Source: Mytilus edulis (Eukaryota). Taken from it: a DNA stretch of 64,000 bases. Numbering within the stretch: the stretch's first letter is position 1; every line of letters begins with the position of its first letter. Below the pieces are notes generated by a model. It was not told the DNA's origin. It did no database searches and saw only the letters and a list, made by a program, of their open reading frames with translations. The stretch covers positions 28,706,001 through 28,770,000 of the forward strand of contig NC_092353.1 in assembly GCF_963676685.1 (NCBI RefSeq), read 5' to 3'. Both the position numbers and the translations under genes were made by a program. Below are positions 7,657-59,834 of the stretch, piece by piece.

Positions 7657-10600
7657 TCAAAACAAGCCTGGATTTTTTCTAACTATTGTTTTTTGTCTAA
7701 TTTCTTGGACGTGTACGGGTCCCTGTTTGATACCACGATTGTTAAAGGGTCCAGCAACTTCTCCAGTTAAACATTTGACTTTAACACAGCTACAAGCGGT
7801 TGATACTTTTTCTTTGTAATACTGCAATCCAGTTAATGGACAGTCAATAAGCATGGTTCTGTACACAAAATTTGTTGGTCTACAAAAATATTGCTTGAAC
7901 ACCCCATAGTCGAATCTACAGTAGTTGTTCTGTTTTCTCTCATCTCTGAAAAAAATCAAAAGTTAACTTTCAATTAAAGAATAATGAAAACAAAAAATTT
8001 ACCGTTGAATAGACTGTTTTTTTTTTATTTTTGTTTTTTTTTTATTGATTTACATCATTCAACTTTAAAGTTTATAGGAATATATATACGAGAACGACAC
8101 AATTATAAATAAAAAAATAATAATACGAATAAAAATAATCCCAGGAACGCTCGTTAGACATGTCGCCACCAATTGTTATAAAAGGCATTGCGAACATTTT
8201 GAAAAAAAAACCCCACTTGATTTTTAACGAACAAAAAATACTTCAGCTAACTCTCGAAATGAAAAAAATATTGTCTATAAATCCACAATTTAAACAATTT
8301 CAGTAACGTGAAATCTTGAAAAACAGAAGGGAAAATTGTCAAAAGTATATAGACCCAAACACTAACATCCATAAGGTGTTTCATTGGATAGCTTGAAATA
8401 TATTACACAATCTGTACTTGAGCTAATGAAAACACATGTATTAAATAAATAAGAGTGACATTACTTTACAATTACAAAAGAAAAACCCGAAATAAGTAAA
8501 CAGCCCATCAAACCAACACTCTAAATAATTTTGTAACTTTTAAAATAGATCTGTTAATGATCTAAAGGTCTGAAGCCGACAGGTCAGTCAGAAAAGAGAG
8601 ACAACGAAATACCATAATATCTCAAGACTTAAACAGAATAATGAAAGACTTAGCCAAGATATTATAACTTTTGGCATTGAACATTTTAGTTTATATTCGA
8701 TTTTATTTAAGAATTGAATGCTCTTTTTTGTAACTTTATTGGGGTGTAAAAGCGTTGACCGAAGTACATTTTGTATGAAGCGCTTCCGCGCTTCATACTA
8801 AAAATGTGCGCACGGTCAACGCTTTTACAACCCTATAAAGTTACCAAAAAAAAGCATTCAATACTCATAATTACATTTTTACCTATAGGATCATGAAAAC
8901 ACGCCTTTTATCAAGTTTTTATTTCATTTACCTGAAAAGTTGCATTGTGTAATGCAATTGATTAAGGAATATCACGAGATTTCTAGTTAGCCAATCAGAA
9001 TAACGTATTATAATGAAACATACAGCTAATGTAATTATATTTGAATGACTACTAGACGTTAACCAAGAACCAATCGACGTATTATATTTGGCTGGATAAC
9101 TTTGCAATCAAATTTCCCGTATAAGTTCAAGTGGTGATGTTTTATATCAGCAATCAAATACGATCAGTATTGCTTAGTTGCTTTTCGCGCCATGCGCTTC
9201 ATGCTAGATAAGGATTATGAAGTTTCTTTATTAAATAATGAAATACAGTTTATTATCTTACCCGTTGTAACAGTCCGTCCTGTATATTTTCTGTACGTTT
9301 CTGTCGGGGCCATTCAGTATGACCTGGCACACTTCAAAGCCTTCGGGTAATCCAGTTAGCTCGTGATATACAGTTTTGTTAATGTATTCAATTGGTACCT
9401 TAACTTCACGACAAACTGGTTTCTTTACATAATCTATTTTTTCCCTGAAATATAAATATATATTCACATTGAAACAATGTGTATCTATTGCCAACTGACT
9501 TTTTAAATTGCTATTCAACGATAATATATATATATATTTTAAAATACATTTCCGTAAATATATGAAAATAAAGACAGAAAATTAATTTAGTCATCGTTCA
9601 ACATATTAATTAATTTATGATTGCCTAAGGTCCAGTGGCAAATATTGCGTTCATGTTCAGGACGAGAAAAAACTAACAATAGATACCATAGGTCCTATTA
9701 TAGATGCCGTACGGATTGAAATACGGCGAAATTTAGGTTACCACTGAAAATGAGGATATATCGGATATATAGGTTAAAATTTTAGCCTTGGAACAGTCCA
9801 CCTACAAACCCCTTAAAAGGGTTTCTTAACGTGCAGAGAGCAAGATGCTCTACTGGAGGCATAGTTTAACGTTTATTATTGACTCAAACTGAAGGGATAA
9901 AAGGGGAGGGGATTATATAAGTTATACAAATATACACGAATTTTTGTACCAAAGCGATTCAATTCATTAAATAATCGTGCAAGCTTATTGAGTTATAAAT
10001 GGCACAAAAAAGAAAATTTTGGACTTTTTCATCGACAATAAAACTCTAAAGATCAGAAAAACGTCAATTTTATTAAATCTTAAGCGACATATTCTCATCC
10101 TGAAATACGTGTAATATTTTCAAATCCAATGGGTATTAAAACACCAATCAATTCGCCAAGTTTTTACACATTAACCCCTATCTATTATAAATGATAATTT
10201 TATTTAAAGTTTTTTTTTAGTGTTTTTTCTTTAAACCATCGTAACACTGAATTATTTGTACATTGTGTATTTAAAAAATCATGCAGAAAATTTAAGCGTA
10301 TAAGCAATATCTTCTATGATTTCTTGGTTCCACAATTTGTATTTTAGTTTGCAAGTAAAAATAAATGTGTTGTTAGTCAACTTTGTTGGATGTTTGTATA
10401 ATTTTAGACTATTAATGTACGATGTCTATTATGTAATTTGTTTTTAAATTTGTTAAGTAAATGTGTTACTTAAAAATAATGAAATAAGTTTATCAAATAT
10501 AGTTGAAATGATAATTACCCATATGGAGCAGGATCTCCTAAACATTCACTACATGACTTGATATAGTGGATAAATGATCCATCGCTCTGGGACAATTTCT

Positions 10601-11457
10601 GTCTCAATCCACGCCTACAACACAGAGGAAAAATCAAAATGACCAGACGATGCAATATTTATGAAAGTCTCACCTTTCATTAATTTTTATTTAACATACA
10701 AATAATTTTAAATTTTAATAAATGCTTTTCTCTTTTAAATGTGAACCTTACTGACGTGTCTTTGAAAGATAACGAGTCTATGGAAATACAAAACTCATTA
10801 TAGCGAAAGACTAAACAATTTGAATATATCAAAAATAAATGTAGAAATTGAATATTCAAACATTTGTAAGCATATCCTAAGGTGCATATCTTCGTGTGTG
10901 ATAAAAAAAAATAACATTCAAAAGAACTACTTACATATCTAGTGGCGAATAACCAGCCGGTTTATCACATATCCAACTCCTGTGTGGCATACACTGGTCA
11001 TACAAATACTTGTAGTTGTTGCATACGTCCATAGGTACACACGACACAGAGGCAATGATGGCACAAGTCAGTAGGAGTTTCAACTAAAAAATATTAAAAT
11101 GATTATTTCTTATGCTGATTTTTTTATAAAGACATTTCAGATTCGTATGCTGACTGGTCCAATGGTGGTTTTTAAACAGTTAACTTAATTCAAAACTTGA
11201 ATGTGTGAAATACATGTACGGTATAAGGTTTGAACTAAGAAATGATTTATAATAAAAACAAAAACAAAAACATAAAAAACTTTTGAAGAATTTGCACCAA
11301 AAACATTTTTGAAATAATTATTGTATCAGTTCTAATTATACAGAGGGGTTTATTATTTAGCAATTATTCAAAACTTTGTAAAATTTGATATTTTTATGGA
11401 ACACAGAATCTTTAAAATAAATGAATTCAAATATAACGACATTAGTTCACTTACCAT
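7657..11457 (-). CDS. Family A divergent copy A': secreted cystine-knot protein, 239 aa, with extended basic C-terminal tail
   Basis: Exons 11457-11455, 11083-10935, 10614-10519, 9444-9262, 7945-7657; GT-AG, phases 0,2,2,2; 720 nt. MLKLLLTCAIIASVSC-VPMDVC..DQC..WICDK...PVCREV...VQKIYRTDC...NYC...YFCRPTNF...STACSCVKVKC. PolyA signal (tttatt on + strand) at 7550-7555. Confidence 0.85.
8710..9040. mobile_element. Non-autonomous repeat with 150-bp hairpin in A' intron 4
   Basis: Hairpin 8713-8862 (ATTGAATGCT...AAAAGCGTTGACC...GGTCAACGCTTTT...AGCATTCAAT); right boundary approximate. Confidence 0.6.
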
Positions 11458-11748
11458 TTTTATCAGTGGTCACTTTAAGCAAATTTAAGACGTTTTGATA
11501 TAAATGGTCAAGTGTAGTCTTTATATAGCATATAGGTTGACAAATGGTGTCTTTCTTTTGACAATGATGATGAATTAGCTTACGTACATCATGGACAATG
11601 GCCATAATGACGTAGGTCCTTAGGTCAAACTATAACATACTGGTCAGCGATTGGTCAGTATGCATATATCCTTGTCGCTTAGATTTGTGTATATATAGAC
11701 ACAAGTTACTGGTGGTTAGCAGAACCAAGAAGAGACACAAGAAATAAG
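11458..11748. promoter_or_regulatory. Bidirectional promoter of the divergent pair A'/B'
   Basis: TATATAAA on - strand (11520-11527), TGACGTA 11608-11614, GCGATTGG (CCAAT) 11647-11654, TATA-like run at about 11690-11698 on +. Confidence 0.6.
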
Positions 11749-12200
11749 GTAAACTATTCTATTCTACTTCATTTTCAGCAAAAGCCAAACATTATAAAGA
11801 GTTTAAAACAGATATTTAAATTTTTAACTTTAACGCTTTAACTATTGATTCAATGTTCCATTGTTGGTTTTCCCGTTTGAATGGTTTTACACTAGTATTT
11901 TTGGGGCCCCTTTATAGCTTGCTGTTCGATGTGAGCAACAGCTCCGTGTTGAAGGTCGTAACTTGACCTATAATGGTTTACTTTTATACATTGTTACTTG
12001 TATGAAGAGTTGTCTCATTGGCACTCATACCACATCTTCCTATACCTATTAACAATTGCTTTATCAAATCATATCAAATATTGCATGATATCGTTAAGCA
12101 AAATAAGCGCTTTGGTTTTTTAATTTTGATATTAAACCTACGGCTTCAGATTGCCGTAAAACTAACGATTTGTTAATAATGTGTTCATAACTGTTTGTAG

Positions 12201-14889
12201 ATGAGGCATAGTCTATTTTTCCTCGCTGTATTACCATGTGTGTTTGGAATATTTGGAAAGAAATGTGTTGTTGATCCGATAGAAAACAGATGGCCGGACA
12301 TGGGAAAGATATGTCATGATCCGTTAGAATACAACCAGTAAGTATACATTTTTAAACAGTTGTTTATATTGTAAAATGCATGAATTCTAGAGAAAAAAAA
12401 CTCTGTAATCATACCATTGGTTGCAGTTTGATAATGTTGATTCGAATTGCACTATGAATATTATCAAACGGCCGTAATTCTATTTGCCATTTTTTACCCG
12501 AAATACACGATCACCTAAACTTATTAGTTACAGCTTGAGTAAATTAATTAAAACAATATAATGCCATCTGTCGAAGATGAATATCATGTTATTTTACATT
12601 GTCCTGTTTATAATGATCTTCGACAAGTTCTTTTTACTGAGTCTCTTAAAATTGATGGACATTTTAATAGTTTTACAGATTGTCAGAAAATGGTATTTTT
12701 ATTTTCGAATCAAGATATTATAAGATTATGTGCCAAAACCTGTAATTTTATTCTTAAACGACGCCGAGAAGTTTTATATTGTAAATAATAATTAAATACT
12801 TTTGTTGTATAATTTTACCATTTAGGTTTAATATTTATTATTTACATATACATATTCTTTTAAGTGATTATCGTCTCTCATAAATCTGTACAGATTGGCT
12901 TATGTATACAAAATGTATCTTTTATAAATGTATTATGTAATTTTATACATAAGGTGAGACGTAAATAAAATATTGAATTGAATTGAATCTATCGGTCAAT
13001 GTATAATTTGACCTGCCTGGTTTTGCCCGACTTTCGCATGTGGTATTTATTACGTTTGGGTGTTTGTTTGCTTAACATCCAGTGTCAAATGTCAAATATT
13101 TTATGCACTTTAAGCACGGAAAAAAATTAATGATGTTAAATATAGACCGGTTGAGTACGATGGATAGGTTTGACATTTTTGATTTGCAACGAGCAACCTA
13201 CAAACTCATCAATGAGCTGTTTCAATCATTCACTGGCACTTCAGAGAGTATAAGACTATCCAACATTATGCAATAGATTTAATAACATGCATGTACCTAG
13301 TTATTTCTTTTTATTCTCCCCTCTCCCAGCCAACATGAATCGCCTCGTTAGCATGAGAGAAGTCCAGGTGACCTATTCTTAACTTGTCATTTACAAAAGT
13401 AAGAAATGTAATACTTGGCTAAAAGTATAACTATTATGCTAATGTGTCTTATAAACTTCAAACACATTAACACAATAATTGAACGAAACAAAACAATTTT
13501 GTTTTTATATAAGCTCAATTAAATAACACAGTAAATAAATACCCTTTTCTCTTTATTCAGTATTGCTATAGAACAGGCTATAATAGATGATCCAGAAATC
13601 CAAATGTATTTACAAGACGCCAGTAAAATATACCAACCAGCTGTTCCTTATGATGACCCACAGTAAGTATATTTTTATTCAATTTTGCATACTATCAGAT
13701 TTTTTTAAACATAAAAATGTTCATCCCCAAAAAATACTGTGGTAAAGGAAATGACATACAAATATTCTGCATCCAGATTTTCCGCATACCCTTTAGTGTT
13801 AAATCTTGAAGAAAAAAAAATTGATTGATAGCGTCGAAAAACTATAAATAAATGTTAACAAAAATTATTTTGAGTGAGTAAAAAAACCAACAATGAAATA
13901 ATAGATAACTGTAGAACCCTTGTAAGCAATGCTACATCAATGAACGTCATATATGAATGAGAAATTGATAGTTTTTTTTGTCTTTTACAGTATTTGCCCA
14001 CTTGATATTGGAAATCCCAGTGGACCACAGATCGTAGAATGTGGTAGTATATGTCCCAGCTCTTACACTAACTTGACAACAGTTTGGTATGAGTACGAAC
14101 CAGGAAGGACAACAATGTGTAATGTTATGAGACCATGGCAGCAAATTGTTTATTATATGCAATGCGGGTAAGTATTCCATGAATGACACATTTTTGTTAA
14201 GGGCTAGCTGAAGCACTCCTCCGGGTGCGGGATTTTCTTGCTGTATTGTAGACCAATTGGTGGCTTTCGGCTTTGTTTTTGCTATTTATCCCCCATTTCC
14301 ATTTTCAATTTAATTTAGTTTTACAACAAAATAAGAAAGGAAATACCAATTATTACAGCAAATAAGTTCAATACAACGAAATACATATGTATACATGGCA
14401 GGCAGAGGTATAAATATAATGCAAATCAAAATTGATTTGCTAAATTTTAATGTCCAATATGTCAAATTTAATATGTTAGCTAATGCAAATTTAAAAATGA
14501 ATAGTGTAGAATGCGCTTTTTCAAATTTTAAATACATCTTGATTTGAATATAAATAATTAATTTATATAATTCTCTATTTCAAGAAATCAGAGTTCTTGG
14601 CATTAATGCGTACATATACATTGTTCACTTCCAGACAATAATTCTATATCTATTTCATTTTAGAACCAAATATCCACTGGTTGATGGTATGGATAACTCG
14701 TTCCAATGTGTACCAGAAGATCTCATCAGACGTAAAATAGCTGTGTATTGTCCAAATATTGTACCACAATGTAGAAAAATGGATATTGACCTACCACAAC
14801 ACTGTGCTGCCAGCAAGTTCCAATGTAGACATAAAAAAGTTTCGCAACAATCAAAATTAGACAATCTGTTTGCTTCTTTTGGTTGGTAA
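12201..14889 (+). CDS. Family B divergent copy B': secreted Spaetzle-like protein lacking knot Cys III/VI, 213 aa
   Basis: Probable non-coding exon 1 ending 11748 (aag|gtaaac). Coding exons 12201-12337, 13561-13662, 13991-14167, 14664-14889; 642 nt, internal phases 2,2,2. MRHSLFFLAVLPCVFG...SICPS...RPWQQIVYYMQC...FQCVPEDLIRRKIAVYCP...LPQHCAASKFQC...LDNLFASFGW. Confidence 0.85.
12561..12988 (+). mobile_element. 5'-truncated non-LTR retrotransposon 3' end in B' intron
   Basis: EDEYHVILHCPVYNDLR zinc-knuckle-like ORF2 C-terminus, then AATAAA and an (ATTGA)n tail. Confidence 0.75.
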
Positions 14890-17800: not shown

Positions 17801-18129
17801 CACGTGCAGAGAAATTTCACTTATGACCAATGTATGGAACGCGAAAACCACATTAATAGATAATCACAGTTGATCGGGGATAATGATAGTTTATCGGTCG
17901 ATCATTATAGATAGTCAGCGTAAAGTATACTTTACGTTCGACCATCATAGATGATCTAATTAATGTGACTCGCGCGCAGATAATGATGGTTACTTGTGGT
18001 TTTCAATTTTTAGTTCAAGTGCTTTAATCTTGCTTGTCCAAACAATTATGACATCTTGTGAGGCTAAGTTATATGCTCCAATAGAAGGGGTATTATTTTT
18101 TTGGTAAATGTATCTGTCCATATTCCTAG

Positions 18130-21106: not shown

Positions 21107-21312
21107 NNNNNNNNNNNNNNNNNNNNNNNNNNNNNNNNNNNNNNNNNNNNNNNNNNNNNNNNNNNNNNNNNNNNNNNNNNNNNNNNNNNNNNNNNNNNNN
21201 NNNNNNNNNNNNNNNNNNNNNNNNNNNNNNNNNNNNNNNNNNNNNNNNNNNNNNNNNNNNNNNNNNNNNNNNNNNNNNNNNNNNNNNNNNNNNNNNNNNN
21301 NNNNNNNNNNNN
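21107..21312. other. Assembly gap (206 N)
   Basis: Run of N. Confidence 1.
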
Positions 21313-24135: not shown

Positions 24136-24327
24136 GCTCCATACGTGGTACCCGTAAACGTTAAAACAGAAGCACACGTAATACAAATTGTAAATATACA
24201 TTTTATTCAATATTTCTGTTGTTGTTTGTAAAAAGACATAAAAGTTAAAACAATACACATAAATGATGAGGATGAAATATATTGCACATGCCCTTGTAAG
24301 TGACTCAATACTGTTTCTTTTTTCATT

Positions 24328-27300
24328 TTAGAGATTTGTTTTGAGGGGGAATGTATCGTCACATCCAACCTTGACACAACTACATGCTGTTGGGATCTTC
24401 TCGGCATGGAGAGTTATTCTTCCATTGTCACTGGGGCATAAAACTGCCATGGTTCTGGTGACGTAATTGGTTGGTCGGCAGTAATAATCCTTTTGTGGTG
24501 CATAATGGAATCTGCATTTTGTTGTTCTCTTATGGCTGTAAATTTAAAAGTAACAACAAATTAAATTAACAAAATAAGGTCAGATTAAACATGATAATAT
24601 TTGCTAGGAATGCGTTCAATGAGATGCAGGCTACACCCCAACGATACAAATACCAAATGATACAAATAACCCAAGGTATATAATGAAAGTGAACACAAGT
24701 ATTCAACGCTAGACATGTGTGAAGGTCTGAATGGGCGGCTTTCATTTCCGTAGTTTTATTTTTTGGTAATTTCCCACCCCCATTCAATTGTGTTTCCTCA
24801 TTATTATCTATTCCTTATTTTTTGGACTATTGTTCTCTTCTTTTTTCCCTTATTTTCTGCATTTGTGGCCCTTTATCATCTATACTGTAAAACCCCACCC
24901 ATACCTTAATGTGTATCATACATTTACGATGGGGCAAAACAATACATGTAGAGTAGAAAAAAAACCACAGACTGATTACTAGCTATAAGGGAAATGATTT
25001 GTAAGTATGGGAAGAGAGGGATTGTTAATTATTCGTCAAAAAGGATATCGGGGACTGTCGAAAGTAATAGACAATAATTTCCATCCGTCTCCTATTATTA
25101 GAAGTATGATAGACAAACAACCAGGAATATGGTTGATACAGACTAACATGAAACTGGCACACTATTTTTGGGCCATCGCAGTTTAACATGCGCAAATATG
25201 TATGTTAAGAATATGAAAATAAGAAACTCATTAACTGGACCAACAAACACATTACATTCTAGGGGATTACCAAAACATGAATCATGAGGATCAGTTACAC
25301 GTACATAGTCACGTTTGGCCTATATTTCAATCTGGCTTAATTACAGTAGCATGTCTTTTTTTCTTGGATTGGTTGCCATTTAATTCAGAAATATTTAGCG
25401 TTTTTTTTTCTCTCATTTTCTGTATTCACTCGTTCACTATTAAAACATGAATAAGATGAAGTGTTACTTATACTTCAGAAAGACGTCAACCAAATTCTAA
25501 ACAGGGCAAACTTTTCTTCTACTTTAAATGATATGTTTGACTCACCCTATACACTCCACTTTATCAATAGTTTGGACTCCCTCTTCGCTTAAAACAACTT
25601 CACAAATTTCCTCGCCCAGTTTTTTACCAGTCATTATTTGGTTGATGGATCTATAAATATGGGTCACAGGTGTGCGCACTTCTCTGCACATAGGAAATTT
25701 ATAGATCTTTGCCATTTTCGTCATTCTAAAATAAAAACATGGAAATATTTATCGAAACCATTATGTGACAATGTGACTTTATTCTAATTATTATTGTAAG
25801 ACATATTAACAGGTGGTAAAGTTTAAATTACTGTGAAATGTTACTAGTAGTACCACAAAAAGTCGAACTGAGTGATTGTGTTGTTTTCAAAATAGATTAA
25901 AATAATAAGAATAAAAAAAAAAGATTATAGAAAAGAAAATATAAAGTGGATTGATTAGAAGAAACACATTAGTTGGTCAGAGTAAAGTGTCTTACGATAT
26001 ATGCCTTTTATTTGCTTTGATCTAAATCATATGCTCATAATCAACATAAAGCAAGGAAGAACAAGAATGTGTCCTCAGAACACAAATGCCCCACTCGCAC
26101 TATCATTTTCTATGTTCAGTGGACCGTGAAATTGGGGTAAAATCTCTAATTTGGCATTAAAATTAGAAAGATCATATCATAGGGAACATGTGTACCAAGT
26201 TTGAAGTTGATTGGACTTCAACTTCATCAAAAACTACCTCGACCAAAAACTTTAACCTGAAGCGGGACAGACGGACGGACGGACAGACGGACGAACGAAC
26301 GGACGCACAGACCAGAAAACATAATGCCCCTCTACTATCGTAGGTGGGGCATAAAAACAAACATAATCTATAAAGTATAAATTTATCAATGAGCTTATAA
26401 TGTCATACTTTCATGTCAAATTTAAAGTCATTACTGGTTATTTATGTTCATTATTGGTCATAACTATTCATAACTTTTTTTCTTTAACATAACAAGTTTT
26501 GATTGTTTAATTATTCGTTTTAGACCAAATCTGAGCTCTTTTTGGGGATTGTGAGCATTTATTTCATACAAAAGAACCAACCAGATAGCAAACATTGAAA
26601 TGTGTTAATGTGAAAGATACGTACCAGCTCCAAATTTAACAAGAGTTCAACTTTCAAAACACATCTCATTTAGATGCCATGTGTTTAGAATAAAACAAAA
26701 AGCAAAAAACATGCACTCTGTCTAAAGACATCTCGGAAGACAACATTATAAAGTCGTCAGTGCTTAATTGAAATTTTCTATTTCTAAAATATATTTACCC
26801 AGTTCCTCTGATATCATCTACTGCATTTTGTTTAGAGAATACGTGTTTTGAGACACCATCGCATTCTTTGCTGTGTTTTAAGTAATTCACAAAACTTCCA
26901 TCTGAGTCTTTCATTGCCTGACGGCTGTAAGAGAGATTTTTATTTATATCTCATCAAATAGTCAATCACATCTTTAATTTCAAGGCTGTTCAATAAGCTT
27001 TGACAGTATGTGGAGATAATATGATTTAATTGGTATGAAGCGGTAAGATGATTTCTTAAGTATGAAATGGAAGCATAATTTGACTAATCTACCTTTTTTT
27101 GTATTAAAACACAATGACTGTTATGATATATATACAAAATTATGAAATATCAGAACTAGCGAATGTTTTTTTTTTAATTTGTATTTGTATTAACTAAGCA
27201 TGTGTGTGAACTCTGATCTTTGATCTTTACTTTTTGCACTTTTTGTTGTATCATATCACCACGTTTTAATGGACTTTGGATAAACCTCAACGATTACCTC

Positions 27301-28765: not shown

Positions 28766-29194
28766 TGTTATTTCTTGTATCGAATCAAAATTAAATCTGA
28801 TGTCTAAACTAGAAAATATATAGATATTTATATGCATAAACGAGGAAATTAACTTCTAGGGTTTTATAGCATCGTTTTTTGATTCGTCCTTTTATTAGTA
28901 CGTTATACACTGATGTATTACTTAAAAGTCTTAAGGCTATGTTAACAAAATAAAAGTTACGTCACAACACATAATGTTTATTATATACATGCTTTGCTAT
29001 CTTTCAAATTGCAAAATACTCCTTTGTTTTTCTTTTTAAGTGCATAATTATGGTTTTGACTATTTGACGTAATAGTGTCTTACGCTTACGAGCTGCGATT
29101 GGCTTTCAAATCCTTTTCCTCATGGCTTAAGAATACATAAAAGCAACGAAATTTTGAGGTATTTAGAAAGTACAGTTGTTCACCAGATATTAAG
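28766..29194. promoter_or_regulatory. Bidirectional promoter A2/B2
   Basis: TATAAATA(-) 28825-28832; TGACGTAA(-) 28957-28964; TGACGTAA(+) 29065-29072; ATTGG 29098-29102; CATAAAAG(+) 29136-29143. Much more conserved between copies than the flanking introns. Confidence 0.75.
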
Positions 29195-32790: not shown

Positions 32791-33348
32791 TAGTTATCTA
32801 CACGACGTGGATTATGCCTAGGATTGACTTTTTTAAAAATTAATTTCAAACAACTGATTTGCGAGTTATTGAATCAACCAGTAATATTTTATCCCATATT
32901 GTTCCATTGCTTTTCTCGTACTTTTTGTGTGTTTCCATCGGGTTTAGTCTGTAATCTATATTTGTTTTCGCCGAAGCGAGTTATGACTTTTAAACTTTAT
33001 ATGCAAAATGAAGTTAAGGAATTTCTTTCGACAACAGATGCTAGTAGATAAAATTATAAGAAATCTTCAGTCGCACAAAGCAAGTGGTATTGTTGAGATT
33101 CCCAATGAATTTTTAAAGTTTGGTGGCGATGCTCTTTTGGATTTACTTGTTGATCTTTTCACCATTATTACTGACCTTGAAACTGTACCTGATGATTTGC
33201 AAAATTGCATCATTAAATCCCTACTCAAAGCTGGGTCTGTCTATGATATTGATAACTATAAGTGGATTACCTTAACGTCTAATGTGAACAAGGTATATTC
33301 GAAAATTTTTGAGGAATCTGTAAAGACCTACTTAGAAGAAAATAATAT

Positions 33349-41327: not shown

Positions 41328-44014
41328 TTAGATAATTCTTTTTGGTGTAAATGTATCGTCACATCCAACCTTAACACAGCTACAGGCTGTTGGGATTTTC
41401 TCGGCATGGAGAGTTATTCTTCCATTGTCACTGGGGCATAACACTGCCATGGTTCTGGTGACGTAATTGGTTGGTCGGCAGTAATAATTCTTTTGTGGTG
41501 CATAATGAAATCTGCATTTTGTTGTTCTCTTATGACTGTAAAATTCAAAGTAAGAACAAACTAAATCAACAAAATAACGTCTTATTAAACATGATAATAT
41601 TTTGCCAGGAATAAGTTAAGTGAGATGCAGGTGATACTCCAATGATACAAATAACAAATGATACTGATACCAAATGATACCCATATTCAATGGTTTTTAC
41701 TCATTTACTTATTATCTTTTCCTTATTTTGTGGCTTATACTTTAGAAAAGACATCAACCAAACTCTAAACAATGCAAATTTTTCTTCTCTTTTTACTTTA
41801 TTTTTGGTTTATCATAGTGTTCATTTTTTATAACTAAATGATATATTTGAGATTAAAAGTTAACTCACCCAATACACTCCACTTTATCAATAGTTTGGAC
41901 TCCTTGGTCGCTTAAAACGACCTCACAAATTTCCTCGCCCAGTTTTTTACCAGTCATTATTTGGTTGATGGATCTATAAATATGGGTCACAGGCGTACGA
42001 ACTTCTCTGCACATAGGAAATTTAAGGATCTTTGCCATTTTCGTCATTCTGAAATAAAAACATGTAAATATTTATCTAATCCATTTTGTGACAATGTGAC
42101 CTTATTCTAATATAGTTGTTATCACGAAATAAAAAATATTTGAAGACATATTAACAGATGGTAAAGTTTAAATAACTGTGAAATGTTACTAGTAGTACTG
42201 CAAACAGTTGAAATAAGTGATTGTGTTTTTTTTCATATATTAAAATAATAATAATAAAAATTTAAAATTATAGAAAAGAAAATATTAGGTGGAATAATTA
42301 GAAGTAACATATTAGTTGGTCAGAGTAAAGTATCTTACGATATATGCCTTTTATTTGCTTTAATCTAAACCAATAAGTAAGTATTGATTGTTTAATTATT
42401 CATTTTGAACCAAATAGTATTTAATCGATATAAAAAATTAAAACTAGAATCATTATTATTTTTGCAATTGTCTAAATAAAAAAACAAAAATAAAAGAATC
42501 TGAGCTTTTTTTTGTGATTGTGAATATTTATTTCATACAAAAAAAACCAAACAGATAGCAAACATGGAAATGTGTTGATGTAAAGATTCGTATCAGCTCC
42601 AAATTAAACAAGAGATCAATAACAATTCATTTAGATGATTTAGGTTTAGAATGCACCAAAAAAAAGACATTTCTGAAGACAACATTATAAAGTCGTCATC
42701 GCTTCCTTTTTTCCATAATTTGCAAAAAAATATTTACCCAGTTCTTCTGATATCCTCTACTGCATTTTGTTTAGAGAAAACGTGTTTTGAGACACCATCG
42801 CATTCTTTGCTGTGTTTTAAGTAATTCACAAAACTTCCATCTGAGTCTGTCATTGCTTGACGGCTGTAAGAGAGAGTTTTATTTATATTTCATGAAAAAG
42901 TCAATCACATCTTTAATTTCAAGGCTGTTCAATAAGCTTTTACAGTATGAGATATAATATGATTTATTTAGTATAAAATGGAAACATAATTTGACTAATC
43001 TACTCATTTTTGTTTTTAAACATAATGACTGTTTTGCAATACAAAATTATGAAATATCGGATCTAGCGATCTGTATTTGTTTTTGTATTTAGTGAAGCAT
43101 GTGTGTGAATTCTGATCTTTGAACTTTACTATTTGCACTTTTTGTTGTAACATATTACCAACGTTTTAATGAACATTGGATAAACCTCAATGATTACCTC
43201 GATAATCTCATTTATTTTCTCAGAAGTGCTGCAATGAAATTTTTAATTATTGCATAATTTTGGTATCTATGGTAAGTTTATTTATTAATAACATTTCGTA
43301 TGATAAGAGTACTTACATGTTAAATCTAACGTAGTTTTCTGGAACCTTACTCTTATCACAAATCCATTCCTGTGGTGGTAGACATTGTCTATACAACAAG
43401 TCGTATTTCTGACAGAGCTGCCATTTCTTATCCTTATTCGGGAGAGCAGTAGCAAGTGTCACAGCTATGACAACAACATAAATTTGAAGTAGAACCTGAG
43501 AGAAAAATATTACGTGTTTTAAATGAATATCTTACAGCTGTCTTTGGTTTTATCTAATTAATGATAATTCATGGTCACAGGAATAATATGCGTAAAGATT
43601 ATCATGCATTACTTCTAATATTGTTTATATTTTCAAAACAGTTCTCTTACAAAATTTGTTTTTCAAAAAGAAAATTGAGTTTCTTAAGACTGTAATCTTG
43701 AATTAAAAAGTAGAAAAACTTTATAAATGTTGAAAGGTATTCACAAATGTTTATTAAATATAAGTTCTTCTTAAAAAATCTAAATAATCTTACTACTTGT
43801 AGACTTTCATATAGATTTCATTTAAATAAAGCAATACATTCATAATATTTCCCTTAGAAAGTAGCTGTATCCAAATAGGAAATTTGTTTTTCGTTTAACT
43901 GCGACCTTTTCTTTAGATTCAGACAAATTGGTCATATTTTAAAAGTTGTTCAAAAACGTTTACTCTTTATAAAAATTTCTTCTTGAATTAATTAAGATTT
44001 AGTCTTACCATCAT
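41328..44014 (-). CDS. Family A copy A3: secreted cystine-knot protein, about 232 aa
   Basis: Exons 44014-44009 (ATGATG|gtaag), 43495-43317, 42863-42738, 42048-41869, 41535-41328; frame intact; ends ...GCDDTFTPKRII*. Confidence 0.87.
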
Positions 44015-44427
44015 TAATTCTTGTTCTGAGTCAAGATTAAATCTGATTTCTGAACTAGAAAATATGGATATTTATATGAATAAACGAGGAAATTAACTTC
44101 TACGGTTTTGTAACATCGTTTTTTGATTCGTCCTTTTATTTGTACGTTATACACTGATGTATTACTTAAAAGTCTTAAGGCTATGTTAACAAAATAAAAG
44201 TTACGTCACAACAATGATTATCATATAAATTTTTTGACAACATTCGAATTGCAAACTAATCTTTTGTTTTCAACTAAAGTGCATGTTTATGGTTTTGACT
44301 CTTTGACGTAATAGTGTCATATGAGCTGCGATTGGCTCTTAAATTCTTTTCCTCATTGCATTAAAATGTATAAAAGAAACAAAATTATGAGTTATTCATA
44401 ATATACAGTTGTTCTAACGATTTAAAC
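44015..44427. promoter_or_regulatory. Bidirectional promoter A3/B3
   Basis: Same layout: TTACGTCA 44201-44208, TGACGTAA 44304-44311, ATTGG 44331-44335, TATAAAAG 44369-44376. Confidence 0.75.
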
Positions 44428-46851
44428 ATGGTAAGAAAAAACTATCATTCACTTATCATATCTTAGTTCAGTAAAACTGCACAAATGATGAAAATTAATT
44501 GAATTGAAATCAATTTTTGATGATTAGTAATATATAAATATAGTATAAATATCTAGTTATTTTAAAATATAATGACTTTAAATCCGAAGGTTTTACCCAC
44601 AAATATAGTCAAATTGTTGTTACTATAATTCTAAACATTTCTTTTATCTAGATGCATATTTTTGTTGTTTGGTTTGCGGTATTGGGAATATCTTGCGCTT
44701 ACAAATGTATGGATCCTCCAGAAATGCATTGGCCTGATAGGGTCAGAATATGTGATGGAAATTTTAAAAATAATCTTGGATGTGATGATAAAAGATTTCC
44801 GTATAACCAGTAAGTACATTCTTTAACCAGTTTTGTTCTGGCGAGTTCTAAACATCTTTCTAAATCATAAATTGTTCCTGATTGAATTTCTAATTGAGAT
44901 ATTAAGAAATCGGTCATTTTGTTATTCAACTTTTTTCTTGCTAATTGTCAACTGGCATTTTATATGTGTTTCAATCGATGATTGAGCATTACATGTTATA
45001 CACGTACTTGTCAAGATTAAGGATATTCTCAAACAATTACACGACGAGAATTTCTTATGGAAGAGAAGTTCTAGGAAATATTATTATAGACATATTAACA
45101 TATAGATAATAGTTCTTTACTGATCTATGGCATCTATGTTGTTATTTACACACCGAATAATTTTATTGAAATTACATTTTAACACACCGGCCTCTGTGAT
45201 TGTAAAGTAAGCAGCGCACTCCAGAGAACAGATTTATTAAAGATTGTTTGACCCATATTCTATTGAGCATACGTTACCCATACAAAAATCTAGAACATTA
45301 AATTTGTAATTATATAATTATTTTTCACCTATAGATGCTAATTTGTGTGTAATTTCTCTTTAAAGAGTTTTCTTTTTTGCAATCACACCACGACTTCATT
45401 TTCATATTTCAAATTACTAGTGTACTATACTTTGATGAATATTGTAATAAGTAAAATGTATACCTTTTTTCATAGTATTGTAATTTTTATTTCAGTGATC
45501 ATATAGAAAGCGCCCTTCAAGCTGACAGAGATCTCCTATCCTTCGTTGAAGATTCATGTAAAATATACTCTCCAGAACTTCCCCTTGAATATGAGTAAGT
45601 TTATCTATAAATTAGAAAATAATTGTTATTACCTCCGTCACTATCGGGGGGGGGGGGGATAAACACTTTTCTAAACGGGTATGTTTGAGTAGACACTGGA
45701 TGTATTTATAACTATCTGGTTGTCTTTTAATTACATTTTAAAAAAAAGTTAAAGCTTCAATTCTATTTAATGTGTCATTGCATCAATTCAAAACATCAAT
45801 CATCAATGTGTTATTAGAAATCAGTCCAAGTATTCATCCACGATGTGTTGTTACACCAAAGTCCGAATATTCAACAACTTAATGTTATTACAAAAGGTCC
45901 GAATATTTGATCACATTGTGTCATAACATTAACCGTAATATGTTTAATGCAGCAAGGTAACTATTATTGCTACGAATCTACATTGCAGTCTATTCTTTTA
46001 CTTTAAATAAAATTTATATAATTGTCCACCTTTGTTTAAAGGCAATGTCCAATTGATGGCGGAGATCTTGGAAAAACATTAGGGAGATGTGAGAAGGTTT
46101 GTGATGGTGAATATGTTAATGTTACAGCTGTAAATGTGCAAATGGTAGACGATAGAACTAAAGTGTCACGTTGGAGCAAGTGTTATGTTATACGTCCATG
46201 GGAACAGAAAGTTTACTACATGAACTGCAAGTAAGTAGTTATAGTCCACACAGCTGTTTTCTTTCTCTTGTGTTTTTTTATTTTTTTTATTTTTTTTTAA
46301 ATCATTATCAACAATGTAGTAGTGGTAGTGAAAATAAAACAACTCTCCATTCAAGTCACAATTTATAAAAGTCAACCAATATATGTTAAAGTATGGTATC
46401 GAACACAGAGCCGTAGCTCACACCGAACAGCTAGTGTACAATTTCTAATACTTTTTTTATAAACCTTTATCCAAATTTACTTTTCAAATTACCTTATTGG
46501 CAAATGAAGAGATTCAGGCTCATCTTTTTAAATTATTTTGTATGTGTGATCAAAATTGATGATTATAAGCTTGCTTATTTAAATACAACAATAAAACATT
46601 GTTTTTTATTTTATTTCAGAAGTGAGCAACCTACTTTTACTACTTCTTTGAGCAGTTCATTTAAGTGTGTTCCAGACAACTTTATCAGACGTAGGGTTGC
46701 CGTATTCTGTCCAGAATTTAAAGAGCACCAATGTCAAAAGGTGGACATTGAATTACCCACTAACTGTGCTGCAAGCCGATTTGAATGTGTCAAACCAAGG
46801 GAAACAAGGAAGCAACAAGTAGACAGCTTTTTCGATTCATTGTTTTTGTAG
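44428..46851 (+). CDS. Family B copy B3: secreted Spaetzle-like protein lacking Cys III/VI, 226 aa
   Basis: Exons 44428-44430, 44652-44809, 45496-45594, 46042-46230, 46620-46851; 681 nt intact. Confidence 0.87.
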
Positions 46852-53174: not shown

Positions 53175-56100
53175 TTAAAGATTTTTTTTGGGTGTGAACA
53201 TATCGTCACATCCAACCTTTACACAACTACATGCTGTTGGGATCTTCTCAGCATGGAGACTTATTCTTCCATTGTCACTGGGGCATAATACTGCCATGGT
53301 TCTGGTGACGTAATTTGTTGGTCGGCAGTAATAATCCTTTTGTGGTGCATAATGGAATCTGCATTTTGTTGTTCTTTTATGACTATAAAAAAAATAATAC
53401 CAACACATTAAATAAGCAAAATAACTTCATATTAAACAGATTATATATTCCGCTCGGAATCAATTAAACAAGATGAGGAGTACACATCAATTAACAGAAT
53501 ATCAATAACACTAATAGATTAATACATACAATGAAAGTAGAGATATGTCTTAAATGACAGACACGTGTGATCATCTGGATGGCGGTCCTTCATTTCTGTA
53601 TTTTTTTTTATTCGAAGTCCCTATTTCTTATGGTGTTTGTCCATTATTCATTCATCGTAATATTTCACCATCTATTATTCCTTATAATTTATTTTATATC
53701 TTTATGAGATAAGAAGAGGTGTGGCTTATAATTCAAAACGACAGAAACCGAACTCTAAACAACACAAACTTTTCTTCTATTTTTATTTCAATTTTGGTTG
53801 ATTATAGGGCTCGTATTTTTCCTAACTTAATGATATATTTGAGACTAAAAATTAACTCACCCTATACACTCCACTTTATCAATAGTTTGGACTCCTTGGT
53901 CGCTTAAAAAGACTTCACAAATTTCATCGCCCAGTTTTTTACCAGTCATTATTTGGTTGATGGATCTATAAATATGGGTCACAGGTGTACGTACTTCTCT
54001 GCACATAGGAAATTTATGGATCTTTGCCATCTTCGTCATTCTGCAAAAAAGGATGGAAATATTTATCTTAAGCATTTTGTGACAAAGTGACCGGTTTCTT
54101 ACGTAGGTTTTATCACGAATTAAAAGAGTATTTTAATACGCCTTCAAAGATAGTCAATTTTAAATCACTGTGAAATATTACTTATATACAGTTGAACTCG
54201 GTGGTTGGGCTCTCTTTTGTGATTGTTAGTATTTATTTTTATTATAAAAAAAACAATCAGATAGCAAAAATTGAAATGTGTTATTGTAATAGTTTTGTAT
54301 AAGCTCCAACTTAAATAAGAGTTCATTTTTCAAAAATCAAGATGCTTTAGGTTTAGAATGAAACAAAAACAAATAATATGCATCATGATCGTTCCGTTTA
54401 AAGACATTTCTGCAGACAAAATAATAAACTCGTCAGTGCCTACTTGTAATTTTCTATTTTTTAAAAGTTATTTACCCAGTTCCTCTGATATCCTCTACTG
54501 CATTTTGTTTAGAGAATACGTGTTTTGAGACACCCTCGCATTCTTTGCTGTGTTTTAAGTAATTCACAAAACTTCCATCTGAGTCTGTCATAGCTTTTCG
54601 GCTGTAAGAGAGAGATACATTAAATTTCATGAAATATTCAATTACATCTTTAATTTCAAGGCTGTTCAATATACAAAATTATGAAATATCAGAGAAAGCA
54701 ATTGGTTTATTTTAAATTTATATTTATTTTCTTTCTAAGTGAAGAATATGTGTGAATTCTGATCCTTACATTTTTCCTTTTTATGTTGTAACATATCACC
54801 AAAGTTATAATGGACTTAAGATAAACCTGAACGATTACCTCGGGAATCTTATTTATTTTCTTAGAAGTGCTGCTATTATATTTTTAATTATTGCATAATC
54901 ATGGTATCTATGATCATAATAAAAATTGAGAATGGAAATGGGGAACATGTCAAAGAGACAACAACCCGACCATAGAACAGAACACAGAAGAAGGTCACCA
55001 ACAGGTCTTCAATGCAGTGAGAAATTTCCGCACCCGGAGGCGTCCTTCAGCTGGCCCCTACACAAATACATATACTAGTTCAGTGATAATGAAGGACATA
55101 CTAAACTCCACATTGTACACAAGAAACTTAAATTAAAAATAATACAAGACTAACAAAGACTAGAGGCTTCTGACTTGGGACAGGCGCAAAAATGCGGCGG
55201 GGTTAAACATGTTTATGAGATCTCAACCCTCCCCTATACCTCTAGCTAATGTAGAAAAGTAAACGCATACCAATATGCACATTACAATTAAATGCAAGAG
55301 AAGTCCGAGTCCGATGTCAGAAGATGTAACCAAAGAAAATAAACAAAATAACAATAGTACATAAATAGCAACAGACTACTAGCAGTTAACTGACATGCCA
55401 GATCCAGACTTCAATTAAACTCATTGAAAGATTATGTCTTCATCATATGAATATCAGGCACAATCCTCCCCGTTAGGGGTTTAGTATCATACCATCATAA
55501 CAAATATGAGAAGAACATAACCCGTGTCATGCCAGCAACTGGTTTTTAGATAGATGTGTTAGTTCCGATGCAAAGACCCTATAAGTGAATCAATATTAAC
55601 GCCAAAATAATCTTTAATGAATTGACAACAGTATCGTAACTATATCCCTTCTTAATAAGTCTATTGAGTTTACTTATTAATAACATGTTGTCTGATAAGA
55701 GTACTTACATGTTATATCTGACGTAGTTTTCTGGAACCTTACTCTTATCACATATCCATCCCTGTGGTGGTAGACATTGTCTATACAACAAGTCGTATTT
55801 CTGACAGAGCTGAAATTTCTTACTCATCGGATTAGGGAGAGCAGTTGCAAGCGTTACAGCTAAAACAGCAATATAAAGTTGAAGTGGAACCTGAGAAAAA
55901 ATCAATACAAGTTTTTAAACGAATATCTTACAGCTATCTTTGGTTTTATCTAATTAATGATAATTTATGGTCACAGGAATAATATGCGTAAAGATTATCA
56001 TTCATTACTTCTAATATTGTTTATATTTCCAAAGCAGTTCTGTTACAAAATTTGTTTTTCAAAAAAGAAAATTTGAGTTTCTTAAGACTGTGATCTTGAA

Positions 56101-56392
56101 TTGAAAAGTAGAAAAATTTTATAAATTTTCAAAGGTGTTCACAAATTTTTACTTAACATAAGTTCTTCTTAAAAAATCTACATTATCTTACCATTTGTAG
56201 ACTTTCATATAGATTTCCTTTAAATATAGCAAAATATTCATAATATTTCCCATAGAAAATAGCTTTATCCGAATAGGAAATTTGTTTGTATTTTAACTGT
56301 GACTTTAACTTAAGATTTAGACAAATTTGTCATATTTAATAATTGTCCATAAACTTTTACTTTTTACATCAATTAAGATTTAACCTTACCAT
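53175..56392 (-). CDS. Family A copy A4: secreted cystine-knot protein, 232 aa
   Basis: Exons 56392-56390, 55890-55709, 54601-54476, 54040-53861, 53382-53175; 699 nt intact. Confidence 0.87.
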
Positions 56393-56808
56393 TGTTAATT
56401 CTTGTTCTGAGTCAAAATTAAATCTGATTTCTAAACTAGAAAATATGGATATTTATATGCATAAACGAGGAAATTAACTTCTACGGTTTTGTTACATCGT
56501 TTTTTGATTCGTCCTTTTAATTGTACGTTATACACTGATGTATTACTTAAAAGTCTTAAGGCTATGTTAACAAAATAAAAGTTATGTCACAACAATCATT
56601 ATTATATAAATATTTTGACAACATTCGAATTGCAAAATAATCTTTTGTTTTCTACGAAAGTGCATGTTTATGGTTTTGACTATTTGACGTAATAGTGTCT
56701 TACGAGCTGCGATTGGCTCTTAAATCCTTTTCCTTGTGGAATTGAAATACATAAAAGAAACGAAATTGTGAGTTATTCAGAATATACAGTTGTTCTAACG
56801 ATTTAAAC
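56393..56808. promoter_or_regulatory. Bidirectional promoter A4/B4
   Basis: Near-identical to 44015-44427; the A-facing CRE-like site is changed to TTATGTCA while the B-facing TGACGTAA is retained. Confidence 0.75.
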
Positions 56809-59800
56809 ATGGTAAGAACAGACTCACATTAACTTATAATATCTTCGTTCAGTAAAGCTCACAAACTATCATATTTGCAATTTATCAATTGAAATCATTT
56901 TTTGATTTATTGGTAACATCAAAATATAGTATATAAATCTAGTAAGTAGTATTAACATAACGTTTTTACTGTCCGGAAATTCTATGTACAAATATATTCA
57001 GAATGTTGTTACATGTGTTACTATTCGAAACTTTTCTTTTATCTAGATGAATATGGTTTTTGTTTGGTTAGCGGTACTAGGAGTAAGTGAAGCGTACAAG
57101 TGTATGGATCCTCCAGAAATGCATTGGCCTGATAGAGTCAGAATATGTGATGGAAATTTTCAAAATAATCTTGGATGTGATGATAAAAGATTTCCGTATA
57201 ACCAGTAAGTATATTCTTTGGCTAGTTTTGTTAAAGACATTCTGACAGGTACTATACATCTGTATAAATTATAAATTTGAAAATTGTTCCCGATTTTATT
57301 CTAATTGAAATATTAAGAATTCAGATATTGTATTATTCAACCTTCTTTTCTTGTTATTTGTAGAAAATTCGTTTGAAGAATTTGCTTTGTATATTGTTTG
57401 GTTTATCACATCTTTTTAATAATTAAAAAAACCAAAAAAACAGCAGAAATCAAAAAGACAAATACAAAATTAAACTAAGAAAGATTAAATACAAAATTAA
57501 TACTGATAAAGATATTACATTTATATATATATATCGATCAGCTGGCATTTCATATGTGTTGTAAACGATGACAAGTGTATAAAATCAAGATATTAGTTGA
57601 ATGTTGTACACTGAATATATTTGACTTCAGCAATTTACATGCAAGTTATAATTCGGAGTTTAGTATGACGTCCATTATCACTGTGGTAGTATACATATTT
57701 TTTAAGGGGCCAGCTGGAGGACGCATCCGGGTGCGGGAGTTTCTCGCTACATTGAAGACCCTTTGGTGGCCTTCGGCTTTTGTCTGCTCTATGGTCGGGT
57801 TGTTGTCGCTTTGACACATTTCCCATTTCCTGTCTCAATTCTTTTTTAAAGCTAATGATAAAATATATGTATGTTTTATATATAAAAAAACATATCTTAC
57901 AAGGTATGTTCAGTTATAAATATAAAAATGCAAACGATTGATGCTGTAGTGCTGGGAAATATCAGTATGGACATATTATTATATAGATGATAGCTTTTTA
58001 CTGATCTATGGCATCTACGTTGTTATTTACCGAAGAGTTTTATTGAAATTACATTTTAACACACCAGCATCTGTGATTGTATAGTAAGCAGCTTACTCCA
58101 GTGAACAGATTTGTTAAAGATTGATTGACACATATTCTTTTGAGAAGACGTTACCCATACACAAATCTTCAACATTAGATTTTTAATTATATATTGAATT
58201 TCTGTGCAATTTCTCTTGTGAAGAGGTGTTATTTGCAATCACACCACGACTTCTCTTTATATTTCAAATTACTAGTGTATTATACTAAGATGAATATTGT
58301 TATAAGTAAAATATATACCTTTTTATTTTTATTTTTGTGCATTTTTTCATTTCAGTGATCATATAGAAAGCGCCCTTCAAGCTGATAGAGATCTCCTATC
58401 CTTTGTTGAGGATTCATGTAAAATATATTCTCCAGAACTTCCCCTTGAATATGAGTAAGTTTATCTTTATATTTGGAAATAATTTTTATGACATCAGCCA
58501 CTATCGAGGGGAGACATACTTTTCTAAACGGGGTGTTTAAGTAGACACTGGATGTATTTATTATTATCTGGTTGTTCTGAAGATGATAGCCAACTGTCTG
58601 ATATTTAGATAATATTCCACGAAATAACATTCTGTTAATTTAATGCGTCCGAAAAGTTTTAATTGATTTACTTTCATCATGAATCATAAAAAAAAATGTA
58701 TAAAAAAGTAAAGACCTTAGAACCTCTATCACAAAGATAGACTTTACATGAATGTCTTTTAATCACATTTTTATAAAAAAAAAGTTTAAGCTTTATTTCT
58801 ATTAAATGTGTCATTGCATCAAAGTCAAAACATCAATCATCAATGTGTTCGACATATTCGACCACATTGTGTCATAACATTAATCGCAATGTGTTTAATG
58901 CAGCAAAATAATTAATATTGCTATGAGTCTGCATTTCAGTTTTTTTTTCCTTTAAAAAAAATTAATATGATTTCCCCCTTTTTTTAGACAATGTCCAATT
59001 GATGGCGGTGAGCTTGGAACAACACTAGGCAGATGTGAGAAGGTTTGTGATGGCGAATATGTTAACGTTACAGCTGTAAATGTGCAGATGGTAGACGAAA
59101 GAACTAAAGTGTCACGTTGGAGCAAGTGTTATGTTATACGTCCATGGGAACAGAAAGTTTACTACATGAACTGCAAGTAAGTAGTTATGTTTCACACAGC
59201 TGTTTTCTTTCTCATGCGCCTTTTTAAAATCTTTCAATTATTATCAACAATGTAGTAGTGGTAGTACCAAAAGACAAACTTGTTCACACAGATATAAGAA
59301 GTTGTTGTATGAGTGCCAATGAAACAACTCTCCATCCAAGTCACAATTTATAAAAGTAAACCATTATTGGTCAAAGTACGGTCTTGAACACATTAGGTCA
59401 CAACGAACAGCTAGTGTATAGTTTCTAATGATTTATTTGTTATTTTTATAAACCTTTATCCTAATTTACTTTTCAAATAAACTTATTGTTAAATGAAGAT
59501 GTTTAGGCTCATCTTCCCAATTTCTTTTGTATGTCTGATCGAAATTGAAGATTAAAAGCTGCTTATTTAAATAAAACAAAAACTGTTTTTTTTTAATTTC
59601 AGAAGTGAGCAACCTACTTTTACTACTTCTTTGAGCAGTTCATTTAAGTGTGTTCCAGACAACTTTATCAGACGTAGGGTTGCCGTATTCTGTCCAGAAT
59701 TTAAAGAACACCAATGTCAAAAAGTGGACATTGAATTACCCACTAACTGTGCTGCAAGTCGATTTGAATGTGTCAAACCAAAGGAAACAAGGAGGCAACA

Positions 59801-59834
59801 AGTAGACAGTTTTTTCGATTCATTGTTTTTGTAG
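56809..59834 (+). CDS. Family B copy B4: secreted Spaetzle-like protein lacking Cys III/VI, 226 aa
   Basis: Exons 56809-56811, 57047-57204, 58356-58454, 58988-59176, 59603-59834; 681 nt intact. Confidence 0.87.

Follow-up and report, generated by a model that had tools for sequence, protein, structure and literature searches.

Spaetzle carries a C-X-C motif near its C-terminus that supplies two of the knot cysteines, and it is activated by proteolysis of a pro-form and binds a Toll receptor. In the heterodimeric cystine-knot hormones (GPA2/GPB5, bursicon/partner of bursicon and the vertebrate glycoprotein hormones) two paralogous knot subunits make up one ligand, and at the level of genome organization COL4A1/COL4A2 and its duplicated pairs are head-to-head paralogs with a short shared promoter whose products co-assemble. 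To our knowledge, a paired gene layout of this type is not a known feature of the Spaetzle family. The locus described here lies in a 64,000-nucleotide stretch of the Mytilus edulis genome (C10:28706001-28770000, hereafter the window, of approximately 31% GC and with a single run of N) and consists of repeated pairs of two different genes, A and B, that diverge from a short common region and encode secreted-looking, cysteine-rich proteins. Our analysis makes this array a promising candidate for a signalling ligand composed of two parts.

The locus resembles each of these systems in part. With Spaetzle/DNT (PF16077) it shares the precursor layout, in which a signal-like N-terminus and an N-terminal region precede a C-terminal domain of approximately 105 residues, as well as the C-X-C of A close to the C-terminus, but the A/B knot domain contains 9 cysteines in comparison to 7 and B lacks the C-X-C. 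The likeness to the heterodimeric hormones is structural, as the C. elegans alpha2/beta5 hormone was one of the structures that resembled A (Z 4.6-4.7); A and B have no sequence relationship to these hormones and no C-X-G-X-C, and the heterodimer is in this case only predicted. A and B diverge from a short shared promoter as do COL4A1/COL4A2 and the histone H2A/H2B genes, and both the A/B and the COL4A pairs have been duplicated as a unit, although the proteins are unrelated and co-assembly, which is proven in those systems, is hypothesised for A/B.

Repeated exon blocks were first located by a six-frame self-comparison of the window, and splice-aware gene models were then made with database orthologs as a guide, their coordinates running from ATG to stop (Table 1). 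Four divergent pairs (c1 to c4), each with A on the minus and B on the plus strand, were obtained in the window with all eight open reading frames (ORFs) intact (A, 231-239 amino acids; B, 213-226 amino acids). An earlier note on this DNA, made from the sequence alone, had described four such cassettes with eight intact ORFs; both statements were borne out, the first by the models and by RNA junctions of c3, and the stop codons of A_c1 and B_c4 (7657 and 59834) are the exact limits of the array that it outlined. Its spacing of 417-430 bp between the start codons of three cassettes also agreed with our measurements (430 bp in c2 and 417 bp in both c3 and c4), the fourth, c1, having 744 bp. The spacings of c2-c4 are not independent observations, since they are near-equal by common descent.

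Each A gene comprises an upstream exon whose sole coding contribution is the ATG and four further coding exons, and the donor of this first exon reads ATG/GTA in 7 of 7 copies and ATG/GTAAG in all except a distant copy described below (the slash marks the splice site). B_c2 to B_c4 likewise begin with a short upstream exon in which ATG is the last triplet. An ATG at 44224 had been considered as the start of A_c3 and was rejected on the grounds of wrong phase and absence from c4 and c0; it was replaced by the ATG/GTAAG at 44011. Intron 1 of A ranged from 453 to 6141 bp across copies and the copy-to-copy differences in intron size result from repeat insertions, in agreement with the heavy transposable element traffic that had been noted for the introns. 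In A_c2 an exact-looking 435-bp tandem duplication (27732-28604; 2.0 copies, 98% match) accounts for an intron 0 longer than in c3 and c4.

A search of the whole genome identified seven A and seven B genes, every one of them on C10, with six of each arranged in head-to-head pairs. The two-gene unit has been copied on C10 six or more times, and the locus is a cluster built by segmental duplication of this head-to-head unit. Beyond the right edge of the window an inverted pair, c5 (B on the minus and A on the plus strand), again has an ATG spacing of 417 bp and is accompanied by a lone intact B, B_c6 (approximately 1251-4913 of segment L003, equal to C10:28791251-28794913), with no A gene within 15 kb. 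Just left of the range covered by the earlier note, and overlooked in it, is a fifth intact and inverted A, A_c0, with no B exon found within 10 kb, which is matched by the proteins P0008 of M. edulis and P0018 of M. galloprovincialis. The earlier statement that no B gene occurs without an A consequently holds inside the window and fails outside it, at B_c6.

The two unpaired genes are informative with respect to the history of the array. Of the promoter, A_c0 retains the A-side half alone (equivalent to 43986-44221 of c3) and B_c6 the B-side half alone (equivalent to 44324-44660 of c3), and each is the outgroup of its own family at a similar distance. On the basis of these complementary halves and matching outgroup positions, A_c0 and B_c6 look like the halves of one cassette that was split through its promoter. 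They are situated at opposite edges of the array, and their M. galloprovincialis orthologs (P0018 and P0005) are located on one 337-kb contig.

Another head-to-head pair of the c1 type (L006 in Table 1) was found at C10:12.775-12.781 Mb, 16 Mb from the array. Comparison with c1 gave a synonymous divergence (dS) of 0.29-0.45, which is too large for alleles, and a ratio of non-synonymous to synonymous divergence (dN/dS) of 0.08-0.11, and the pair is an old dispersed duplicate in which pairing has been retained. The c1 type itself is well separated, A_c1 (ortholog P0014) having approximately 40% identity to A of c2-c5 and B_c1 lacking two cysteines that other B copies carry. Among c2-c5 the copy relationships of A and B are not fully congruent, as B_c2 falls clearly outside B_c3/c4/c5 (dS 0.32-0.39 versus 0.14-0.25) whereas A_c2 is as near to A_c3/c4/c5 as those are among themselves (dS 0.16-0.24), and this may point to exchange between cassettes by gene conversion or recombination. 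Linkage in other Mytilus genomes was read from shared contigs and consecutive LOC numbers: the two genes occur on shared contigs in M. galloprovincialis, M. coruscus and M. edulis, and the M. trossulus gene numbers run consecutively from B (LOC134686388/389) to A (390).

Transcription was assessed with RNA contigs of three runs from three studies, in which coverage of c3 was confined to exons. The contigs lack the introns and join the exons where the models do, with GT..AG borders (CT..AC for the minus-strand A), with joints of 41534/5 to 41869-72, 42048 to 42738 and 42863 to 43317 in A_c3, and of 44809 to 45496, 45594 to 46042/3 (both GT..AG) and 46230 to ~46620 in B_c3. The runs were guessed to be RNA, yet exon-only coverage together with canonical joints identifies the contigs as spliced transcripts. 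Spliced contigs of A and B were both present at similar depth in these runs, which had been picked because they contain this stretch; in run X9, contigs near-identical to c3 had a depth of 16.4 for A and 13.9 for B. The unmatched 5' end of one contig, belonging to the B 5' untranslated region, maps exactly to the predicted upstream exon of B_c2 (29173-29197), and the first exon of A was placed from the ATG/GTA donor conserved in all copies together with annotated proteins that start with M followed by VPLQ. Within intron 3 of B_c3, a short interval (46339-46372) had an RNA contig depth of 135-600 with loose ends on both sides, and this very deep signal therefore represents a repeat transcribed at many loci and not B sequence.

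The pairs c2-c5 show the hallmarks of bidirectional promoters, namely divergent orientation, ATG-ending first exons less than 1 kb apart (417-430 bp) and a conserved intergenic region. In c3 this region contains TATA-like boxes at ~44071-44078 (minus strand) and 44369-44376 (plus strand), two TGACGTAA sites resembling the cyclic AMP response element (CRE) at ~44200 (minus strand) and 44303 (plus strand), and an inverted CCAAT box at ~44333. All three motif types are conserved in an alignment of four promoter copies and may have a regulatory role. Among c3, c4 and c5 the region between the ATGs diverged by 0.07-0.08 in comparison to a dS of 0.14-0.25 for the flanking genes, or approximately one third of the synonymous rate. 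The earlier proposal of a shared promoter is in this way supported by a conserved region of ~420 bp, by duplication of the pairs as units and by transcription of both genes in the same runs. Selection on the coding sequences was evident in every pair of copies, with dN/dS values of 0.08-0.54 overall and 0.16-0.27 among the paired c2-c5, while the highest values (0.37-0.54) were those of the lone A_c0 and B_c6 against paired copies. These values indicate that all A and B copies are under purifying selection. The adjacency of A and B has furthermore been retained in two lineages in which synonymous sites are saturated or nearly so.

The relationship between A and B was examined at the level of both sequence and gene structure. 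Full-length profile, fold and complex analyses were performed on database orthologs (those with P identifiers), exons were searched singly, and the joined spliced models of the window were used for the ORF check, dN/dS and local hhalign. Alignment of A to B with hhalign gave E 6e-5 over 152 columns and, with more sequences, E 1e-5 over 210 collinear columns, and the last exons of the two genes cross-match by tblastn (E 0.006-0.03). Both genes have three phase-2 coding introns, of which the third lies within one residue and the first within three residues of the same aligned site, and the ATG-ending upstream exon is common to A and to B of c2-c6. A and B are thus anciently diverged, distant paralogs.

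Both proteins are approximately 225-235 amino acids long, with an N-terminal hydrophobic signal-like segment, an N-terminal half with 4-5 cysteines and a C-terminal part of approximately 105 amino acids with 9 cysteines. Mature A of c0 and c2-c5 has 13 cysteines and mature B has 14. The C-X-C of A (C215-S-C217) is invariant, and at this position B has C-A-A, which is in turn invariant across all B copies. In an alignment of 18-21% identity, B lacks the equivalents of A C171 and C217 and has two other cysteines instead. No conserved activation-cleavage motif could be identified in the stretch that links the N-terminal region to the knot domain.

Sequence searches characterised A as a narrow family. 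Exon-by-exon protein searches returned Mytilus proteins only, and an exhaustive phmmer search with the knot exon of A found six proteins among 1.84 billion representatives, so that within the reach of sequence searches A looks restricted to mussels. Two fragments, P0012 and P0013, are distantly A-like. Spaetzle (PF16077) was the only Pfam signal that recurred in A, with 14.7-20 bits (E 0.001-0.05) in 4 of 6 full-length A orthologs against a gathering threshold of 27; these matches cover the C-terminal three quarters of the model. Single A or B exons reached at most 15.6 bits with this profile, and neither c1-type A nor any B matched it. No Pfam profile exceeded its threshold for A or B (DAN was weaker, and Sclerostin was weak for B), the NGF profile (PF00243) matched neither protein, and a search of both against PDB sequences gave nothing meaningful (best matches EBS chromatin protein, E 0.008, and BT_0846, E 0.027). 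Some A orthologs are named 'Spaetzle domain-containing protein' in UniRef while B is 'uncharacterized'.

The weight of the Spaetzle signal can be judged from a scan of the whole genome, in which no locus passed the Spaetzle cut-off and the best match was a true neurotrophin ORF, also with just 20 bits. Since a true neurotrophin reaches this score, 15-20 bits is to be taken as clan-level likeness and not as membership. This single-exon ORF of 248 amino acids (L007:1390-2136; C10:22368390-22369136, plus strand) matches Pfam NGF with E 6.4e-23 and has a basic RSKR-type stretch ahead of the mature domain and a C-N-C end. It had been considered as a Spaetzle-like relative of A, which was ruled out by the NGF match and by hhalign, in which no similarity to A was detected.

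Structural comparison gave a clearer picture for A. In an AlphaFold2 (AF2) model the mean predicted local distance difference test (pLDDT) value was 48 overall, with the N-terminal 110 residues poorly modelled, but residues 118-222 formed long beta hairpins at pLDDT 70-80. The leading Foldseek and VIA matches of this domain were all cystine-knot growth factors (Z 4-5.9), as were all of the top 19 when 48,161 chains were scanned without bias. The matches comprised VWF CTCK, sclerostin, gremlin, Norrin, VEGF, GPA2/GPB5, GDNF, NGF and noggin, with Z values tied within ~1. The C-terminal domain of A is accordingly modelled as a cystine-knot growth-factor fold, a result that supports the fold class but no particular subfamily. 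The best Z values were those of the DAN/sclerostin/CTCK/Norrin group (VWF CTCK 5.5-5.9, sclerostin 5.2-5.3, gremlin 5.1), but these are within 1 of VEGF and NGF, the corresponding Pfam scores are far below cut-offs and A lacks the C-X-G-X-C ring motif. Neurotrophins share the fold class of A, with NGF and NT-3 among the structural matches, and differ in the profile comparisons described above. Membership of B in the same fold rests on its homology to A. In the ESM Atlas the nearest clusters of both A and B were Spaetzle/NGF (0.92-0.93, with 182-196 of 256 features shared), although the recognition value for B is too low for such a score to count as strong.

The earlier description of A and B as secreted Spaetzle-like proteins is therefore upheld in part, both being secreted-looking and cysteine-rich and A having a predicted cystine-knot fold, while neither passes the Spaetzle threshold. 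The profile comparison that the note had proposed returned a recurrent Spaetzle signal for A, at scores below the cut-off and with no match to NGF. These searches do not establish either protein as a member of the Spaetzle family proper, given the curated threshold and the lack of a C-X-C in B.

A complex of the knot-domain parts of A (residues 108-228) and B (residues 84-212) was predicted with an interaction prediction score from aligned errors (ipSAE) of 0.54, in comparison to 0.02 for the best of 3 controls, for which the verdict was 'weak support'. The runs shared at least 82% of contacts, with a partner pLDDT of at least 75. In the benchmark of this score, 51 of 78 solved complexes reached the mark, as did 2 of 108 mismatched pairs; scores of 0.60 or lower that reached it comprised 5 of those 78 solved complexes and all 4 of the mismatches that passed (of 180). 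Of the multimer comparison suggested in the earlier note, the A:B part has in this manner given a score above controls that lies in the weak band and does not distinguish A:B from the homodimers.

The explanation that we prefer, at a rough probability of 0.5, is that the shared promoter would drive A and B in the same secretory cells and that the two chains would act jointly in the extracellular space as a single ligand system, the likeliest form being an A:B dimer through the usual cystine-knot dimer interface, with different cassettes supplying a small repertoire of such ligands. Joint action of A and B in any form, whether as heterodimer or as ligand plus modulator, has even or marginally better odds in our estimation. 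A true A:B heterodimer is more tentative and falls somewhat short of even, and Toll-like receptors as the receptor are only a guess. The most specific version, in which the genes encode obligate A:B Spaetzle-like cytokines, the promoter balances the two chains and six or more pairs, belonging to two deeply diverged types, act as combinatorial Toll-like receptor ligands, seems unlikely.

Several observations weigh against joint action. The intact state of A_c0 and B_c6 means that neither gene strictly requires its neighbour. The ipSAE of 0.54 does not separate A:B from A:A or B:B, and it may reflect only the likeness of a fold family that has many solved cystine-knot dimers and, here, paralogous chains. 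B alone, modelled by AF2 on a shallow alignment, had a mean pLDDT of only 35.7, and as it lacks the second cysteine of the C-X-C and the likely partner of that cysteine, a true knot may not form. With 13 cysteines in one chain and 14 in the other, a single symmetric A-B inter-chain disulfide is not the obvious reading, and the odd number in mature A fits an A-A disulfide as in Spaetzle. The co-occurrence of A and B RNA comes from three runs chosen because they contain the stretch, and promoter sharing was read from the positions of the ATG-ending exons.

A strong rival to joint action is that A and B are independent, cytokine-like homodimeric ligands sharing a promoter, their layout being a relic of an ancient inverted duplication that was passively copied and whose interleaved core promoters are hard to separate. 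This would agree with the established homodimeric state of Spaetzle and neurotrophins, with the cysteine count of A, with the persistence of intact lone copies under purifying selection, with equal spacings derived from descent and with a complex score in the weak band. It accounts less readily for adjacency kept in two lineages over (nearly) saturated synonymous sites and for a promoter better conserved than synonymous sites, and the lone copies on which it draws resemble two halves of one split cassette and have higher dN/dS than the paired ones, so that we consider it possible rather than probable. The loss in B of both cysteines of one knot disulfide and its gain of two others, the presence of secreted antagonists (sclerostin, gremlin, NBL1 and noggin) among the structural neighbours of A, the weak Sclerostin matches of B and the co-transcription of the two genes could instead indicate that B is a modulator of A, such as a decoy, antagonist or folding/secretion partner, which has lost the full knot and kept a surface that binds A or the receptor. 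As the cysteine mapping is taken from an alignment of such low identity and B is conserved as strongly as A, this is distinctly unlikely as a replacement for the preferred explanation. Lastly, A and B could be secreted cysteine-rich effector or structural proteins without a signalling role (antimicrobial, shell or byssus) that reuse a cystine-knot scaffold, for which the mussel-restricted appearance, the tandem expansion seen in many mussel effector families and the absence of any profile above its curated threshold may be cited. We regard this as very improbable, as dN/dS is well under 1 with no sign of the diversifying selection common in effector arrays, and size, prodomain-plus-knot layout and nearest feature-space neighbours are those of Spaetzle/NGF-type ligands.

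Table 1. Modelled A and B genes, intergenic regions and assembly gap (window positions), and the distant pair on C10.
Feature	Position	Strand	Details
A_c0	584..5302	+	ATG-only exon 584-586; exons 1115-1299, 2724-2849, 3501-3677, 5095-5302; 232 aa
A_c1, diverged A	7657..11457	-	ATG 11457-11455; exons 11083-10935, 10614-10519, 9444-9262, 7945-7657; 239 aa
c1 divergent intergenic region	11458..12200	.	ATGs 744 bp apart
B_c1, diverged B	12201..14889	+	exons 12201-12337, 13561-13662, 13991-14167, 14664-14889; 213 aa
Assembly gap, c1-c2 spacer	21107..21312	.	outside all gene models
A_c2	24328..28765	-	ATG 28765-28763; exons 27594-27413, 26924-26799, 25725-25546, 24535-24328; 232 aa
c2 bidirectional promoter	28766..29194	.	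ATGs 430 bp apart
B_c2	29195..31453	+	ATG-ending exon 29195-29197; exons 29427-29587, 29932-30030, 30740-30928, 31231-31453; 224 aa
A_c3	41328..44011	-	ATG 44011-44009; exons 43495-43317, 42863-42738, 42048-41869, 41535-41328; 231 aa
c3 bidirectional promoter	44012..44427	.	ATGs 417 bp apart
B_c3	44428..46851	+	ATG-ending exon 44428-44430; exons 44652-44809, 45496-45594, 46042-46230, 46620-46851; 226 aa
A_c4	53175..56392	-	ATG 56392-56390; exons 55890-55709, 54601-54476, 54040-53861, 53382-53175; 232 aa
c4 bidirectional promoter	56393..56808	.	ATGs 417 bp apart
B_c4	56809..59834	+	ATG-ending exon 56809-56811; exons 57047-57204, 58356-58454, 58988-59176, 59603-59834; 226 aa
L006 pair (C10:12772001-12782000)	B 3645-5384; A 5980-8678	B -; A +	both ORFs intact; positions within L006

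The assembly gap lies 6.2 kb from the B_c1 stop and 3.0 kb from the A_c2 stop, with a dispersed repeat at its left flank. It falls in a spacer and is crossed by none of the gene models, and reading-frame continuity is therefore unaffected, while the adjacency of c0 and c1 to c2-c6 depends on the scaffold join at this position. The spacer between c2 and c3 contains a degenerate reverse-transcriptase fragment (38024-38347, plus strand; Pfam RVT_1, E 1.4e-15), with ORFs at 33008-33397 and 37664-38385 nearby, and this fragment is retroelement debris between the cassettes. Dispersed short repeat families were also present in introns and spacers, including the 46339-46372 interval and 19945-20678, the latter in comparison to 54922-55665, 57638-57913 and 49768-49953. 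Two genes of the window have public M. edulis models, P0003 for B_c2 (190 amino acids) and P0008 for A_c0 (174 amino acids), of which P0003 omits B exon 2 and P0008 omits A exon 3 in comparison to the structure supported by RNA and to RefSeq models from sister species; these omissions are probably annotation errors.

Bivalves possess very large Toll-like receptor families, which are greatly expanded in mussel. Our search of the collection of papers available to us found no description of this mussel A/B Spaetzle-like family. A 2020 mussel immunology paper reported that a Spaetzle homolog had been described in one non-arthropod only, a clam, with no link to Toll-like receptor signalling (PMC7773633). 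A duplicated, conserved and co-transcribed Spaetzle/neurotrophin-like pair offers a concrete hypothesis on pairing and receptors that is cheap to pursue. Even without pairing of the proteins, the array is a clean natural case in which two paralogs are tied to one bidirectional promoter and have been amplified together, and it includes what appears to be a single cassette split through that promoter, leaving one unpaired copy of A and one of B. If A and B do prove to be heterodimeric Toll ligands, lophotrochozoans would gain their first defined system of endogenous ligands for Toll, and within the Spaetzle/neurotrophin clan A and B would be the first heterodimer whose chains are encoded by linked genes.

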